From Paramicrosporidium saccamoebae KSL3 (lineage: Eukaryota > Fungi > Cryptomycota), in the NCBI GenBank assembly GCA_002794465.1, contig MTSL01000065.1:80450-112449 (forward strand): 32,000 bases of DNA, given 5' to 3'. Position 1 is the first letter of the stretch. Each line of letters starts with the position of its first letter. The notes below the pieces were generated by a model. It was not told the origin of the DNA and did no database searches. It was given only the letters and a program-made list of their open reading frames with translations. The position numbers and the translations under genes are program-made. Positions 10,025-24,788 of this stretch are shown piece by piece.

Positions 10025-10516
10025 TTACTGAAAAACTGTGCCCTCTGAAGGCTGGGCAGCCTTCTTATTTGCGCCAGATGCCATTTCCCGTCGAATATCT
10101 CCCAGAACACTTTCCATAGTATTATTACGTGACCATGAGCCCAAGCTGCGAATTCCGGTTCCCAGGACCTAACATTACAACCAAACAATCCATGTACCCT
10201 TCCACTCCGCTGGTCCACAAAGGACAAGTTCACCTTTGACAAAAAGTACACCTCTGGCGGCGCCTCTGGATACTTCTCTCCACACTCAATCCGCAGCGAG
10301 TAAATTCTATTTTCGTGCACACTCTACAATTAGCCACGAATCGGAGCGTACAAAGGGCGGCCCCAGGACGGTGGCGTTCCAGTGGGTTAGGGTAATGTCG
10401 TCACCCGCAGCAAGACCATAGCTGATACTGCCGTCGCCAATACCCTTCTCTCCATTCTCGAGCTCCTCCAACAGACGAAAGTTACGCGGGATGCTCATGT
10501 TGCTGTTGGTGGGCAT
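10025..10516 (-). CDS. MMS2: Ubiquitin-conjugating enzyme variant Mms2/Uev1, 2 introns
   Basis: [27 protein letters not shown]...[36 protein letters not shown]...KVNL, and C-terminal [29 protein letters not shown]. Introns are 28 and 29 nt. Confidence 0.93.
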
Positions 10517-12043: not shown

Positions 12044-13309
12044 CTACCAGATGTAAAGTGGAGTAGTGTAATCCGACGGGTTCGGCAGCCCCCGACGCCT
12101 AGAATTTGCTGATTGGGGTGTCGAGCTCTCTTCTGAGGAGAATAACCGGGTTTCAGGGGATGCTGACTTTCCAGTCTGTCTATTTGGTGAGGATGTAGCT
12201 GGAAGGGGGCTTGGTATTAAGTCTTGTGATGAATTTAGCGTGGAGTCCAATTTTAAATCCGTCGCTGAATCCAAGGCCGAGTCCACCAGTGGATCCATGC
12301 GGCCCGATGGAACCGGAGCTCCAGGCCGACAAGGAGGAGAGGCGCCTAATAGCGGCGGAGGACATGATTCTGGCCTCTTTGTCTCTGCCGTACTTTTGCT
12401 CAGAAGCATGGTCAGCATGGATACATTGGGTCTGTCAGAATGGGGAGGGGATGCGTGTTTCCGCGCGAGCTGGCCATGCCGCCTAAACAAGACATTTCCG
12501 TCTACTTCCTCTTTCGTCCTAGACAGAATCTCGCCAACCGAGCCGACCGAAATGGTGTCGTTCGTCGAACCGACGCTGGAATGTTCCGCCGCTGCATGTC
12601 GCACTGGCGCTTCCTTTGGTAAAATCATAATGTGCTTCTCCTCTAACAATGTATTCTTAGCCTCTTCAGCTTGCTCAGAAATTTTTTCCAGCGAATAAAG
12701 TTGTTGCCGTTTGATAAACTTGTCCACATTCTTCTTCCGCCGCCTTGAGGACTCAATTTTGTTGGTAATGACGCTAGAGTTGGACGTGGTGGATTCTGAG
12801 GATTCTATTGTGGCAGCAGCATCGGGACTCGTAGCAGTCAACGCAGTAGTTGATGTTTGGGTAGAATCGAGTGAATAGGGTCTATCCGCCATGACAGGGC
12901 CGCCAGCGCGCACCGAAGCCCGCTGGATTTCCAACAGGATTGCCGAGTACCCTTGACTGTATGTTGTGGTTGGCCTGGCCACCAAACGGGGTATTGCTGT
13001 TGCCTGGGAACGTATCTGGGACTCGCCTCGGGCCACCTCCAGCTCCACCTCGCGTCTCTCTCGTTCAGCCTTCTCGAGTTGGTTCTTTCGATGCCAGGCA
13101 CGCCAAGTCAGGTTCTCAAACCGCTCTCCTTCGGCCATGACCGATTTCACCTTTGTGGCAACCTTCCACATTGAATAGAGAGAGTCCTCAGATGCCTCTG
13201 AGGAGAAGACCTTTTGGGCGATATGCTTTGCAGAGTCATTGTCGTTGGGATGGTCCGTTTGCTCCGTGGACTGGAGTTCCATAAATACCGGTTGCAGGAG
13301 CAGGGCCAT
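12044..13309 (-). CDS. Fungal DUF1752 (PF08550, AreA-like N-terminal) domain protein, Mks1/Reg1-like regulator
   Basis: LYSMWKVATKVKSVMAEGERFENLTWRAWHRK matches the DUF1752 signature (MW.......G.RLENL.WR). The remainder is S/T/P-rich with an SMLTMLL motif and a terminal Trp. Confidence 0.7.
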   Translation of the reverse strand: MALLLQPVFMELQSTEQTDHPNDNDSAKHIAQKVFSSEASEDSLYSMWKVATKVKSVMAEGERFENLTWRAWHRKNQLEKAERERREVELEVARGESQIRSQATAIPRLVARPTTTYSQGYSAILLEIQRASVRAGGPVMADRPYSLDSTQTSTTALTATSPDAAATIESSESTTSNSSVITNKIESSRRRKKNVDKFIKRQQLYSLEKISEQAEEAKNTLLEEKHIMILPKEAPVRHAAAEHSSVGSTNDTISVGSVGEILSRTKEEVDGNVLFRRHGQLARKHASPPHSDRPNVSMLTMLLSKSTAETKRPESCPPPLLGASPPCRPGAPVPSGRMDPLVDSALDSATDLKLDSTLNSSQDLIPSPLPATSSPNRQTGKSASPETRLFSSEESSTPQSANSRRRGLPNPSDYTTPLYIW

Positions 13310-19401: not shown

Positions 19402-22061
19402 ATGCCCCTTCGTACATTCCCGCACTACGCGCTTCTTCCAGAAGTATCTACCCAGAAACCTGACGACATCAACTTGCGATTTCTGGCCAAAGCATCGGCG
19501 GCCGTCGCAATAGCGCAGATAAACTGCACTCCGCCGTTGCTGAGACTCATGGAGGTGCTCCAGGATGGATTTGCTGATGGCTGTTCCGTGACCTTGTTGG
19601 ACCATCACGTTAGGCCGAGTACTGTAAAGATACCTCCAAACATTGTGGATGTGCTCGTACAAACAATGGCACATGATCCCGGGATGTTGGACAAGGAGTT
19701 GATGCTGGTTGATCATTCTTCGTCAGTCTTCTACTTGACATTGCCCATGGATGACATTCCTGGGCTGACTGGGAGTCACAAGATGATCCTGTGGAGGCAC
19801 GAACGCATTTTTTCTGCAGATGATGTCACAGCAGCCAAGCTCATGCTTCAAATGTTTAGGGCACCATTTCAAGCAGCAGCCAGTGGAGCTGTGGTTGCCA
19901 GCCGGAGTAGATTCAGAGATACCCTTCACGACGGCGAGTTACTGATGGCTACTCTGGATGCGATTCCGGATATTGTTATCGTTTGCAACTGTGAAGGGAA
20001 TGTCCTTGAAAGGAATGCCGCTGCTTTGAAATGTTGGGGTTTGGTCAAAATCAAGGACCCTGACGGTAGCCATTTTCAAAATTATCTAAAGCTTGTGTGC
20101 CATCCTGATGACCTGCAATGCACAAATGAAGTCTGGACGGAGGCTTCCCATGGGGAACTTTCGAAAAAGCTTCGCTGTCGGATCCTAGTACGCAGTTTGT
20201 GTGAGCAACTAAATGGGTAGGTTGGAAATGACAAATATCACAAGCACCTGATGCGATTTCTGCCCATACAGGCAGAAAGACAGAGTATCGTCTGGGCAGT
20301 TGTCTGCACAGACCTGGAAGTGGGCGAAACCAGCGACGAAGTACGATCTATGGCGGCCATGAAGAGTCGATTTCTTGCTGAAATCTCGCATGAAATTAGA
20401 ACCCCACTGGCTTGTGTTTTGGGCACCTCTACTTTGTTGTCACATACCACTCTGAGCTCAGACCAACAGGAGCTTCTGAGAACAATCACACTATCTTCGC
20501 AGCAGTTGTCAAACTTGATTAGCAACGTCCTCGACTTGAGCCGCATTGAAGAGAACAAGTTAATCTTGGAGAGAGTGCCCATAATGCTGGAAAAGTGCAT
20601 TTCCGAAGTTATGGAGTTGTTTAGAGCCAATCTTGTTCGCATGAAGATGGATCACATCATTGAGCTGAATCCTTCAGTGCCCAAGTGGATAATATCCGAC
20701 GAACTACGTCTTCGTCAGGTTTTGACAAATCTCCTTGGTAACGCTATCAAGTTTTCCGAACCCAGCACAGCCGTATCTGTCAAAGTTCGAGGAGTGGAAA
20801 AAGATGGACTACCCTACATTGAATTCTCTGTTCAAGATGAAGGGCTAGGAATCGCCGAGACGGCGGGGAAAAAGTTGTTTCAAAGCTTTAATCAGGTGGA
20901 TGCATCGACTACAAGAAAGTATGGTGGATCAGGGTTGGGACTCGTTATAAGCAAGGTTACTTACTATGCCATTCACCTACTAGATTTTTTAGAAGCTTGT
21001 GGAAATTCTTGGCGGATCGATTGGGTTTACCAGCGAATTTGGCAAAGTAAGCGATCCTTGGATTAGATCAATGGTAGGGCTCAATCTTTTACTTTACGAT
21101 CCCGCAGGAAGCAATTAGCAATGTGCCCGAGATTAGCATAGAGTCGGCAACTGGGTTCCAAACATTGGAAGAGAAATTAACCGAACTTCGACAGACGGAT
21201 TTTCAACTACCATGGAGGGTTTGCATTAGTTTTAGGCACCCGCGATTGAATCATCATTTGGCGGACCTTGTTAAGGAGCTGCCAAATGTCGCGCTCGCTG
21301 CCACTCCGGATTTTGAAGATTGCAGACTCATATTGATGACTGATGATGCTGAGCTGGCCCAGGAAGCTCTTCGCAAAGGAAAGTGTCTCGGTGTTTGCTT
21401 TGCAGGTTATGAGCTTGCGCAAAGTTTGAACAATCCAAAGATCTACTTTGTACGGAAGCCCGCTAGCGATATCGCCTTCTTGAATTCTATCGAGTCACTT
21501 TTGCAGCGAGGGGCCGGGACCATCGCGGCAAATGCAAAATTGACCTCTTCGCGAGTAATGGGGATGACGCCCATTGCAGAGCACTATCCGCTTCGTATCC
21601 TGATAGCCGAAGATGATTCCCTGAGTCAGCAGGTACCAAAACTGTCAAACGATTTGTCAACTGGTAGCTCTTGGTGAGGATTCTGGAAAAGCTTGGCTAC
21701 AATAACATTTCTAGAGCCAATGACGGAGAAGAGGCTGTATCATTAGTTCTGGATAATCCGGATAATGTGCCGCAACTTGTTCTAATGGACATGCAAATGC
21801 CCGTATGTCAAAGCGATCGTCCCTGATGCATAGGTCTTGGATGGCTGCAGTGCAAGTCAAGCGATCCGGCAAGTAAATAGCACAACACATATCGTGGCAA
21901 TGACAGCCAATGCATTTACTGAAGATCGCGATACTTGCATGCGGGCCGGCATGTGTGACTATGCTTCAAAGCCTGTCAAGCTGGAGGCACTTGTGGACAT
22001 TCTAAAGAGATCCCACGAGGTCGTAGAGAAGCGTATTTCATGCAGATGTAATCGACTGTGA
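19402..22061 (+). CDS. Hybrid sensor histidine kinase (GAF-like, PAS, HisKA, HATPase, pseudo-receiver, receiver), 5 introns, about 830 aa
   Basis: H-box KSRFLAEISHEIRTPL (His codon 20389-20391), N-box DELRLRQVLTNLLGNAIKF, G1 VQDEGLGI, F-box LFQSFNQVD, G2 YGGSGLGLVISK. Receiver LIAEDD...LMDMQMP (Asp 21788-21790)...MTANA...SKPV. Introns at 20188-20220, 20956-20992, 21047-21077 and two in the receiver. Confidence 0.95.
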
Positions 22062-22166
22062 CTTGCCAAATAAAGAAACTTTCCGTGTCGAGAATCTTTG
22101 TAACAAACTTCCGAGCTACTTTTTTGTATCTTGTGATCTACGACCGGGCATCTTAGTAATAAGCTC

Positions 22167-24788
22167 ATGATCCGTAACTTGCCACTAAAGCTCGACAACG
22201 ACAGACTCCGCACATGCGACAGATTTTTGCACGAAGTGTACAAGGCCTTAAAGTTCCCAGAGAGGCCCGAAGAGCCTGCCATGTTGCGCTTCTTTGCCGT
22301 CATTCGAACATGCTTTGCTGATGGATGTGCTCTCGTGGCCTGTGATGAAACAGGACGAGCTACCAATTGGACGGGAGACACTCGCCTGACAGAATGGATT
22401 AACAATGTCGCTGCGCAGGCATGTAAGAGTACCTTTGTTCAAGAGCCAGTGCCGGGTTATGATGCAGCGAGGCAGACGTGCTATCTTGCAGTCCCGATTC
22501 CTTTGCAGGCCCGCGGCGCCATCTCTAGTTACATAATCCTGTGGCGCTCAGGAAAGCTGTTTACCACCGAGGACATGGTGGTCATCAAAGTGACTGTTGC
22601 AATGTACTTGGGACAGGCCAGCACTGAGCGCCCCTATACAGACCTGAATCGGACCATATTCACGCCAGACGATTCTGAGGCTTTGGCTATGGAAACGCAG
22701 CTCAAGAATGCTCTAGACGCCATCCACGACACGATTATCATTTGTGGGAGCAAGGGAGAGATCATTTGGTGCAACCGCCTAGCTAGAGCAACTCTGGAAA
22801 TGGGCGGATCAATGACTTCAACAGCATGTGATTTTGGATGGCTAATAAGCCTTATTCACGCCGATGATGTGCACATTGCCTCAGAGAAGATTGAGCATGC
22901 CTGCAATTGTCATGGAACAGTTTCTTTTTCGGCGAGATTTCCGACGGGATCGCGTCGTTATCAGCTGTTTGAGTGCCAAATTACTCCATGCTTGAGGCCT
23001 GCAAATATCATCAGAAGCTGGATTTTTACTGCATGGCAGGCTGACCGCTTTCTCCTTCCCCATGGAGAAACAAGACTTTCGGAGCAAGGATTGGCTTCGC
23101 TAGTGCAAAATCTTCGAGTTCCACTAGGAACCTGCAAAATGACGCTTGAAAATCTAAACTCGATGGAACTCCCTAGTGACATTCGAAGTCAGCTGGAGAT
23201 TCTTCAACAGGCCTGTCTCCAGCTCTACATCAACGTATCCAGTGCCTTTGTAATGACTGAAAGGCCAGAGCAGGAGTTTGTGGCAAAATACTCCACCATG
23301 TGTCTTGAAGAGTACATTGATTCAATAATCCGCCTGCGTGGTCCCGAACTTATTGAGAGAGACACAGAGGTGCTGTTGACGGTGGACCCGAATCTGCCCA
23401 AGGTGCTCTACACTGATGAATTGCGTTTTAAGCAGATTATCCTCAGCATCTTCAGCATGGGCTTGAGGGAAGGCCCTCGGAAATCGGCACTAATCTTGCG
23501 TTTGACCAAGGAATTGTCGCCCAAGGGCTCCAATTTGCAGATTGAAGTAAACTGCCCAAGAACGCCTCGTCTAGAGGAAAGCCATCACATGTCGTTAACA
23601 TTTGATTTGGACCTTGTCATCATAGAGGTAACGGATTATTAGGAATTGATCTAACAACGCTAGAAATTGACAAATCTCCTTTGTGGTTCCGTAAGGACAG
23701 AGGCTATTGAGGAGAAGCAGGTACAGGACGACATGGTCGTTTCATGGTTGTAGTTTTTAAAACTGCAGGTCCAATTGCCAATTCTAGACTGCCGCGAGAG
23801 TACCGCATGTGAATACAGGACTCGCCAAGTCGAACTTCAAGCACTGGGCGCATACATCCGATCGCTCGCTTCGTCTCGACCCATTTTTGTCCAGTGTTGT
23901 GCCGAATGCAAAGAACTAAGAGAACAACTTGCGACCACTTTTGGCTCGGTGTTGGGCTTGAGCATCGTTGACAGGTCGTTGGAGGAGACTCGTTTGGTAG
24001 TGGGGGCCATCAATGTGTGTATTGTAAACACTTTTGACAAGCATCTCACTAAATGGCTCGAAAAGCAACCGCCTGAACCGGCAACAAATGTTCGCTTTAT
24101 CCTACTCCGTGGCTTGTCCGAAACGCCGCCACCTGGGATAATGTATACAATTCTTTCAAGACCTGTGCTGGACATTTCCATTATTCGCGCCGTCCATGAG
24201 GCTATTATACGAAGTACTTTGGCCGTGGTCACGGACAATCCTGTCAGTCCTGAAAAGTCGACATTGAAGGAGGAGATTGTTGCCAAAAGTCTGGCTACCA
24301 ACCTTGCCACTGGACATCCAATGCGCATAATGGTGGTGGAGGACAGTTTTCTAAATCAACAGGTACTGGTAAAGACACTCAACAAACTTGGATATCTAGA
24401 TGTCGTCAAAGCAGCCGATGGGCAAGACGGTTTGGATCAATTTGTCAAAGAATTTCAAGGCGCCAACCCCATCGAGCTTATATTCATGGACATGCAAATG
24501 CCCATTCTCGACGGCTGTGGTTCTAGCATCAAGATTCGTGAATACGTTCGCAGCAACATGCCCGTTTCCAGAAAAAATGGCCCACACATTGTCGCCATGA
24601 CTGCCAACTCGTTTAGCGAAGATCGTCAGGCTTGCTTGGCGGCGGGCATGTGCTGTTTTGCAGGGAAACCTGTGCAGTGGGAGCGACTGGAACAGCTGAT
24701 CGTGGAGGCATATGACTCTTTGACCGCCAAGCGGGCCTGCACATGCCATAATGTGGCGATTACAAAGCCTGAAAGGAAAGCAATTTAA
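22167..24788 (+). CDS. Hybrid pseudo-histidine kinase paralog (degenerate HisKA/HATPase, intact receiver), 2 introns, about 850 aa
   Basis: Same domain order as the upstream gene, but the H-box reads ASLVQNLRVPLG (Gln at 23106-23108 where His should be), the N-box reads DELRFKQIILSIFSMGLR, G1/F are absent and G2 reads TFDLDLVIIE. Receiver VVEDS...FMDMQMP (Asp 24489-24491)...MTANS...GKPV is intact. Introns 23628-23663 and 23721-23753 join ORFs 22167 and 23775 in frame. Confidence 0.88.

Follow-up and report, generated by a model that had tools for sequence, protein, structure and literature searches.

A hybrid histidine kinase and a predicted kinase-dead paralog with a conserved receiver form a tandem gene pair in Paramicrosporidium saccamoebae

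Introduction

Why would a genome keep, directly beside a hybrid histidine kinase (HK), a second copy whose kinase core appears to be gone? This question is raised by a locus of Paramicrosporidium saccamoebae KSL3, a member of the Rozellomycota that lives as an intranuclear parasite of amoebae. The locus lies in a 32,000-nt stretch of contig MTSL01000065.1 (assembly GCA_002794465.1, forward strand, 80,450 to 112,449), which we call the window and whose numbering is used throughout. Two genes on the same strand, HK1 and HK2, occupy positions 19402-24788 (Table 1). A sequence-only reading of the window, made without database searches, had described the first as a hybrid HK and the second as a pseudo-HK with an intact receiver. 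Here we ask what HK2 has lost, what has been kept under selection, and what a kinase-dead copy might do next to an active one.

Results

A canonical kinase and its predicted kinase-dead paralog

HK1 has every element of a hybrid HK. HisKA (5.7e-18, 65 bits), HATPase_c (8.9e-22, 78 bits) and Response_reg (1.5e-23, 83 bits) are all found by Pfam above the curated cut-offs. The multiple alignment shows an H box (FLAEISHEIRTPL) with the phospho-accepting His319 (FLAEISH(319)EIRTPL), the N (NLLGNAIKF), G1 (DEGLGI), F (LFQSFNQ) and G2 (GGSGLGL) boxes, and a complete receiver. The order of domains is the same across the family: a GAF-like domain, a PAS domain, the dimerization and phospho-His helices (DHp), the catalytic ATP-binding domain (CA), a receiver-like linker and the receiver (REC).

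HK2 is collinear with HK1 over its full length (BLASTP, 23% identity, E 2e-51), and the two share the N-terminal motifs FADGC, ILWR..F..(D/E)D, LDAI.D..I.C and H.DD. Pfam finds Response_reg alone in HK2 (8e-14), with no match to HisKA or HATPase_c. In the alignment Gln314 (CAA, 23106-23108), within a region that reads LASLVQ(314)NLRVPL, stands opposite the His319 codon (CAT) of HK1. The N-box Asn residues are replaced by Ser and Met, there is neither a G1 DxGxG nor an F box, and the G2 position reads DLDLV. As its predicted protein reads, HK2 is without the residues needed for ATP binding and for a phospho-His. The same losses had been listed in the sequence-only reading, and both Pfam and the multiple alignment confirm them.

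We compared the window species (W) with five relatives: A (L002, a 126-kb JGI contig, to which L003-L005 are identical), B (L006), C (L007/L008), F (L011/L012) and G (L013). Full exon models for A, B, C and F were curated by hand from open reading frame (ORF) segments and the DNA, and G was modeled only in part. In the four curated HK2 orthologs Response_reg alone scores above its Pfam threshold and neither HisKA nor HATPase_c does so; the sole sub-threshold HATPase_c match is that of B HK2, at 15.3 bits against a cut-off of 26.4.

The register of the missing His, a point at which the earlier reading had allowed that it might be mistaken, is fixed by BLASTP, by the multiple alignment and by a shared phase-1 intron. 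This intron comes right after the His codon in HK1 of C and F (AEISH|E), and the same intron follows Gln in HK2 of B (ASLIQ|D) and Thr, Ser and Thr in HK2 of A, C and F; it is therefore an independent anchor, and the register is upheld. The window HK2 has lost the intron, yet it matches B motif for motif (ASLVQNLRVPL versus ASLIQDLKIPL). The H-box His is absent from every HK2 ortholog, the residue being Q in B, T, S and T in A, C and F, and, as aligned by eye, R in G (SVRNLKGHL).

An AlphaFold 2 (AF2) model of HK2 exon 1, built on a 44-row alignment, has a predicted local distance difference test score (pLDDT) of 84. Its Foldseek matches include PAS-histidine kinases, DhaR(N), plant phytochromes (their degenerate histidine kinase-related domain, HKRD) and two non-canonical HK-like proteins, NifL and RetS (kinase region). 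The predicted fold keeps a DHp-like hairpin and a CA-like domain, and the loop at aa 463-478, where an ATP lid is expected, is disordered in the model. With a predicted HK fold, no catalytic residues and a signature of purifying selection (pN < pS, see below), HK2 can be classed as a pseudo-histidine kinase.

An intact receiver

The receiver of HK2 has remained complete. D698, D747, T784 and K806 are invariant in 13 of 13 family members, and the first acidic position, E697 in HK2, is D in two of them (P0039 and P0045). The sequence-only reading had called this receiver intact and placed its phospho-Asp codon at 24489, and both statements hold. The modeled HK2 receiver resembles the Sln1 receiver (Sln1-R1) from Ypd1 complexes with a TM-score of 0.89 (Foldseek), and the active-site loops are almost alike in HK1 and HK2 when aligned. 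This near-identity suggests that the two receivers may dock the same histidine phosphotransfer (HPt) partner. A Ypd1 query returned matches only in Saccharomycetes and a few other fungi, in a search limited to shared 5-residue words.

Not far beyond the final helix of the receiver, both proteins also carry a Cys-x-Cys motif, and both Cys columns are invariant in the 13 aligned sequences, active or dead. A role in metal or redox chemistry would be a guess.

The pair is old and has stayed together

Relatives proved hard to find by ordinary means. A word-indexed protein search returned only bacterial receiver matches for full-length HK2 and none for its exon 1, and look-ups of exact proteins gave no record for the raw HK2 ORF or for one ORF next to it. 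An exhaustive HMMER search with exon 1 gave 70 proteins, of which the best three are HK2-type N-termini (31-38% identity), and every match that we looked up derives from metagenomes or Logan assemblies. The GAF-like sensor (FADGC ... LxWR..F..(D/E)D) has no Pfam match, and when 1.84 billion representatives were searched exhaustively it turned up only in about 50 proteins, all from uncultured organisms (among them P0031-P0054).

An HK1-type gene is followed by an adjoining HK2-type gene on the same strand in all five relatives, making six species with the window. This conserved adjacency is indirect support for the view that HK2 may control HK1, as a DivL-type regulator controls its partner kinase. 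The two genes occupy the syntenic saccharopine-dehydrogenase/LSM locus in A (L002), B (L006), C (L007), F (L011) and G (L013). Synteny with the window reaches to both sides, with cyclin, saccharopine dehydrogenase and LSM genes upstream and genes for cytochrome b5, a RING protein, Alg9 and the aspartyl protease downstream. The adjacency on which the sequence-only reading had made its proposal depend is thus a property of the relatives as well. So is the openness of the second gene: in five species that diverged deeply, HK2 stays open over 815-909 codons and its introns are where they should be, and G keeps the same ORF segments. The view that gene 2 is no decaying pseudogene is borne out by open models in four relatives and a partly modeled fifth, which share its losses and keep its receiver.

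In neighbor-joining trees the HK1 and HK2 clades each receive 100% bootstrap support, and the groupings (C,F) and (W,A) recur in both clades for the four species with both genes in full length. A single duplication before these species split follows from the well-supported clades and their common topology. Four intron positions are common to HK1 and HK2 genes, the H-box phase-1 intron among them, which means that the template of the duplication was genomic DNA and not a processed transcript. Together the trees and introns indicate that one DNA-level duplication probably preceded the divergence of the sampled species. The comparison also shows that the predicted loss of the phospho-His and of the ATP-binding motifs from HK2 came before that divergence.

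More distant family members lie at another locus, next to Rpn3: L009 and L010 each have one canonical kinase there, and L014 has a tandem of two. In the latter (959-6561 of L014, Logan ERR1598040) both kinases have HisKA, HATPase_c and REC, which could mean either that tandem duplication has recurred in the family or that a state before degeneration has been preserved. The placement of the HK2 clade relative to these Rpn3-locus kinases has 67% bootstrap support and carries a risk of long-branch attraction.

Where constraint lies

We computed mean identity per domain among orthologs, separately for HK1 and HK2. The figures for HK1 and HK2, respectively, are 45% and 32% for the N-terminal GAF-like domain, 40% and 27% for PAS, 80% and 16% for DHp, 54% and 23% for CA, 22% and 30% for the linker, and 58% and 61% for the receiver. 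Among HK2 orthologs the receiver is therefore the best conserved part and DHp the worst, and the linker is better kept than it is among HK1 orthologs.

In the closest pair, C and F, the HK2 receiver has a proportion of nonsynonymous differences (pN) of 0.15 and of synonymous differences (pS) of 0.85. For HK2 DHp plus CA the values are 0.42 and 0.80, with codon-position distances of 0.55/0.30/0.67; in very divergent regions such pN and pS figures are somewhat biased by the protein-guided alignment. With pN below pS and these codon-position distances, even the dead core is not neutral. HK2 is, as these comparisons have it, a maintained gene whose functional center is probably the receiver, followed by the sensor and the linker, its catalytic core having been largely freed from constraint.

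Several points weigh against this picture. Synonymous divergence is saturated or nearly so (pS at least 0.73) in every region of every pair, and pN against pS and codon-position distances had to stand in for dN/dS. Strains from separate samples are identical and provide no polymorphism data. Some HK2 proteins have a nonconserved His upstream of the H-box position (at -4 in F, -8 in C, and -15 in W and B), and, since the relatives' gene models were curated by hand, short exons near the H box of A, C and F HK2 may be a few residues off. Lastly, the alignment used to model DHp and CA with AF2 held canonical kinases, and retention of the fold is in part imposed by this input.

The identity between strains extends across both genes for L002, L003, L004 and L005, and holds also for L007 and L008 (100% over 3.0-5.6 kb, from different sequencing runs). 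This could be due to repeated sampling of the same strains or to very low diversity.

What HK2 may do, and what else the locus could be

Because the conserved core of HK2 consists of its sensor and receiver, its most likely role is that of a phosphate acceptor in trans within the relay of HK1. We propose that HK1 and HK2 are tandem duplicates of a Rozellomycota-specific hybrid HK family and that HK2 serves as a sensor-bearing phospho-acceptor in HK1's relay, a reading to which we give an even chance. HK2 would be unable to autophosphorylate and would work in the same relay as HK1. Phosphate would reach its Asp747 in trans, coming straight from phosphorylated HK1 or passed back by an HPt protein, and HK2 could then divert, buffer or gate the flow of phosphate in response to a second signal detected by the diverged GAF/PAS region of HK2. 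Phosphate acceptance in trans and a role as phosphate sink had already been suggested in the sequence-only reading, and both are putative. It is tempting to go further and to see in the pair a self-contained, co-inherited module in which kinase-dead HK2 is a dedicated, sensor-gated phospho-acceptor, response regulator or phosphate valve, an independent eukaryotic counterpart of the DivL/RetS logic on the branch to Microsporidia; we hold this wider claim only tentatively.

A different arrangement, of the RetS/GacS or ethylene-receptor type, would have HK2 and HK1 heterodimerize through their DHp helices, HK2 switching the HK1 autokinase on or off and its receiver being secondary. The sequence-only reading had likewise suggested a heterodimer through the HisKA helix bundle. 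AF2 does retain a two-helix DHp hairpin in HK2 (pLDDT 75-90), the RetS kinase region and a RetS-GacS co-complex are among the Foldseek matches, and the tight, conserved adjacency would suit an obligate partnership. However, a specific interface with a near-invariant partner would be expected to be conserved, and here no part of HK2 is less conserved than the proposed interface (DHp 16%), while the partner surface on HK1 hardly varies (80%). The idea is weakened for this reason and fits poorly. The aligned DHp region is also shorter in A and C HK2, and the strongest constraint falls on the receiver, which would be dispensable if HK2 acted in this way. We consider a DHp heterodimer unlikely.

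Information could also flow in the opposite direction, as in DivL, with the receiver as an input phosphorylated by HPt and the dead DHp/CA and GAF/PAS regions as an output or scaffold that binds other targets, of which HK1 need not be one. That a kinase-dead HK can be repurposed is known from DivL (PMC4211667), and an intact, highly conserved receiver with a sensor and linker still under constraint speaks for such reversed flow. Yet no output can be identified from sequence, the part that serves DivL in sensing, DHp/CA, shows the least conservation here, and the arrangement leaves unexplained why HK2 has stayed 54-110 nt from HK1 in five lineages. We rate it as quite improbable.

Is the locus one gene after all? 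In GenBank, MTSL01000065.1 is annotated with one gene of 1551 aa that starts at 19402 and covers both HK1 and HK2 (19402-24788 of the window; 1-3908 of L001), and fungal dual HKs exist in groups XII-A and XII-B (PMC6324907), so that HK1 and HK2 might be one spliced polypeptide with two HK-REC modules. The frames are, however, parted in all five species with full models (5/5 for each signal): an in-frame stop follows the conserved C-terminal Cys-x-Cys of HK1, an AATAAA lies in the spacer of 54-110 nt (chance per spacer 0.012-0.06, measured on the same loci), and an ATG stands where homology to HK1's own N-terminus begins, which in the window is the Met of HK2. Among the enumerated intron variants the sole GT..AG bridge that gives 1551 aa is a 498-nt intron (21856-22353), about 10 times the local intron size, which would delete the receiver Thr and Lys of HK1 and the FADGC of HK2. 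A dual HK on one polypeptide is thus very unlikely and was rejected on the stop/AATAAA/ATG pattern and the oversized bridge; read from its sequence, the locus does not qualify as a dual HK, and we read it as two separate genes, pending RNA-seq.

That HK2 is a duplicate without function that is being lost, as the disappearance of all its kinase motifs and its very divergent DHp/CA might suggest, is hardly credible and effectively refuted, given open frames of 815-909 codons with correct introns in five deeply diverged species and a receiver with 61% identity among orthologs (C versus F pN 0.15, pS 0.85).

Gene models and neighborhood

Start and stop codons of both genes and the spacer of 105 nt agree with those given by the sequence-only reading (Table 1). 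Its estimate of about 850 aa in an intact frame for gene 2 needs a small correction: the frame is intact and the model gives 845 aa, or 851 aa with an alternative donor at 23739. All introns of both genes are GT..AG and 31-48 nt long, and several are in frame and stop-free, which is why ORF-based or default gene callers misplace them. The third HK1 intron was set at 31 nt (21047-21077) because this choice restores the conserved GKGSIFYFTIP strand. Very short introns are found elsewhere in the clade: a related kinase on L010 has a GT..AG intron of 21 nt (10443-10463).

Neighboring ORFs in the window encode Pex16, an AreA-type GATA-like domain, saccharopine dehydrogenase, an Alg9-like mannosyltransferase and an aspartyl protease, a set that marks the genome as fungal. 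An intronless neighbor on the minus strand (12047-13309) is an exact match to contig MTSL01000065.1. The P. saccamoebae genome, for which a transcriptome is also reported, has 7.28 Mb, 46.9% GC and 3750 MAKER protein models (PMC5701793), in keeping with the compact fungal-like genome that had been surmised from the letters of the window.

Table 1. Features of the HK1/HK2 locus, in window coordinates.
Feature	Position	Strand	Details
HK1 gene	19402-22061	+	830 aa; ATG 19402, stop 22059-22061; 5 introns
HK1 exons	19402-20187, 20221-20955, 20993-21046, 21078-21632, 21668-21802, 21834-22061	+	six
HK1 introns	20188-20220, 20956-20992, 21047-21077, 21633-21667, 21803-21833	+	33, 37, 31, 35, 31 nt
HK1 GAF-like N-terminal sensor	19474-19881	+	FADGC / LxWR motifs
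HK1 phospho-accepting His319 (CAT)	20389-20391	+	in H box FLAEISHEIRTPL; family alignment
HK1 receiver-like linker between CA and REC	21180-21572	+	about 140 aa
HK1 receiver phospho-Asp751 (GAC)	21788-21790	+	family alignment
HK1 Cys-x-Cys motif (C825-R-C827)	22041-22049	+	13-sequence alignment
Intergenic spacer, HK1 stop to HK2 ATG	22062-22166	+	105 nt; AATAAA 22069-22074, right after the HK1 stop codon
HK2 gene	22167-24788	+	845 aa; ATG 22167, stop 24786-24788; 2 introns
HK2 exons	22167-23627, 23664-23720, 23769-24788	+	three
HK2 introns	23628-23663, 23721-23768	+	36, 48 nt
HK2 sensor region	22212-23054	+	GAF-like aa 16-153 (22212-22625), PAS aa 167-296; AF2
HK2 DHp-like helical hairpin	23073-23258	+	aa 303-364; Gln314 at His position; AF2 helices aa 303-331 and 337-364
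HK2 CA-like alpha/beta domain	23289-23810	+	aa 375-520; without N/G1/F/G2 boxes; span takes in both introns
HK2 receiver-like (pseudo-receiver) linker	23823-24236	+	aa 525-662; AF2 beta-alpha pattern, pLDDT about 60-77
HK2 intact receiver	24324-24728	+	aa 692-826; Pfam Response_reg 52 bits against a cut-off of 30.2
HK2 receiver residues	D747 24489-24491, T784 24600-24602, K806 24666-24668	+	plus E697/D698
HK2 Cys-x-Cys motif (C831-T-C833)	24741-24749	+	13-sequence alignment

Discussion

Relation to known kinase-dead regulators

Kinase-dead HK-like regulators are already known: DivL, the subfamily-2 ethylene receptors and the phytochrome HKRD, with RetS as a non-signaling hybrid partner. What differs here is that one active and one dead member are conserved as separate genes in head-to-tail order, that the competent receiver of the dead copy is its most constrained part, and that the setting is Rozellomycota. 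Subfamily-2 ethylene receptors (ETR2, EIN4, ERS2) and the phytochrome HKRD combine GAF/PAS inputs with a degenerate HK domain and act with kinase-competent paralogs; ETR2 and EIN4 also retain a receiver. Unlike HK2, these plant proteins have unrelated sensor domains, are encoded by dispersed genes rather than a conserved head-to-tail pair, and belong to another lineage.

DivL, which controls CckA in Caulobacter (PMC4211667, PMC9430884), resembles HK2 in having an HK fold that lacks the phospho-His, is under selection and acts within the relay of a genuine hybrid kinase. It differs in that Tyr takes the place of His, there is no receiver, and it is not the tandem paralog of CckA; HK2, by contrast, has an intact receiver that is better conserved than any other part of it, and shows little conservation in the DHp/CA on which DivL relies. 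RetS of Pseudomonas, the partner of GacS (7n0e, 6dk8), is also a hybrid sensor with receivers; it modulates a second hybrid kinase instead of signaling through autophosphorylation of its own. However, the canonical HK motifs are still present in RetS, which works by DHp heterodimerization and by phosphatase or siphon mechanisms, whereas HK2 has lost these motifs and its DHp is unconserved.

The dual HKs of fungi and amoebozoans (groups XII-A and XII-B, such as Cryptococcus Tco2), whose function in fungi has been called obscure, share with our locus two successive HK-REC modules that arose by duplication (PMC6324907). Here the modules are two genes parted by stop, AATAAA and ATG, and the second is predicted to be catalytically dead.

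A receiver-like domain between CA and the true receiver, as in HK1 and HK2, has parallels too. Plant AHK receptors have a pseudo-receiver at this place. In bacteria, RcsC has an alpha/beta ABL domain there (2ayx) and ShkA a comparable one (6qrj). The AF2 model of HK2 exon 3, a moderate one (5-row alignment, pLDDT 67) in which the receiver itself is confident, has the RcsC linker plus receiver as its best two-domain Foldseek match, with ShkA also among the matches; this likeness is one of predicted structure (linker pLDDT 60-77), from which no ligand can be deduced, such as the c-di-GMP that ShkA binds.

Significance

Surveys of fungal two-component systems gather proteins with all canonical HK domains (PMC5285503), and so a member with a dead kinase escapes their notice. 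HK2 is in addition hidden within the fused 1551-aa gene model, and the annotation should be split in two. Our search of the open-access literature turned up no account of histidine kinases from Paramicrosporidium, nor of any conserved fungal pseudo-HK. The genome paper makes no mention of histidine kinases or two-component systems (PMC5701793), and in the only other paper containing both Paramicrosporidium and histidine kinase terms the species is a mere phylogenetic outgroup.

The descriptive findings are solid, and the mechanism is a proposed one that lends itself to standard biochemistry. The pair is a natural experiment on what happens to a hybrid kinase after its catalysis has been lost: the receiver, sensor and linker stay selected and DHp does not. 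The family also adds a previously unnamed GAF-like sensor, marked by FADGC and LxWR, that is so far seen only in metagenomic relatives. Paramicrosporidium has been placed as sister to Microsporidia (PMC5701793), which are without HKs (PMC5285503, PMC6324907). If HK2 is indeed part of a dedicated phospho-acceptor module, the logic of DivL and RetS would have arisen independently on the branch leading to Microsporidia, a group that later lost all of its two-component genes.

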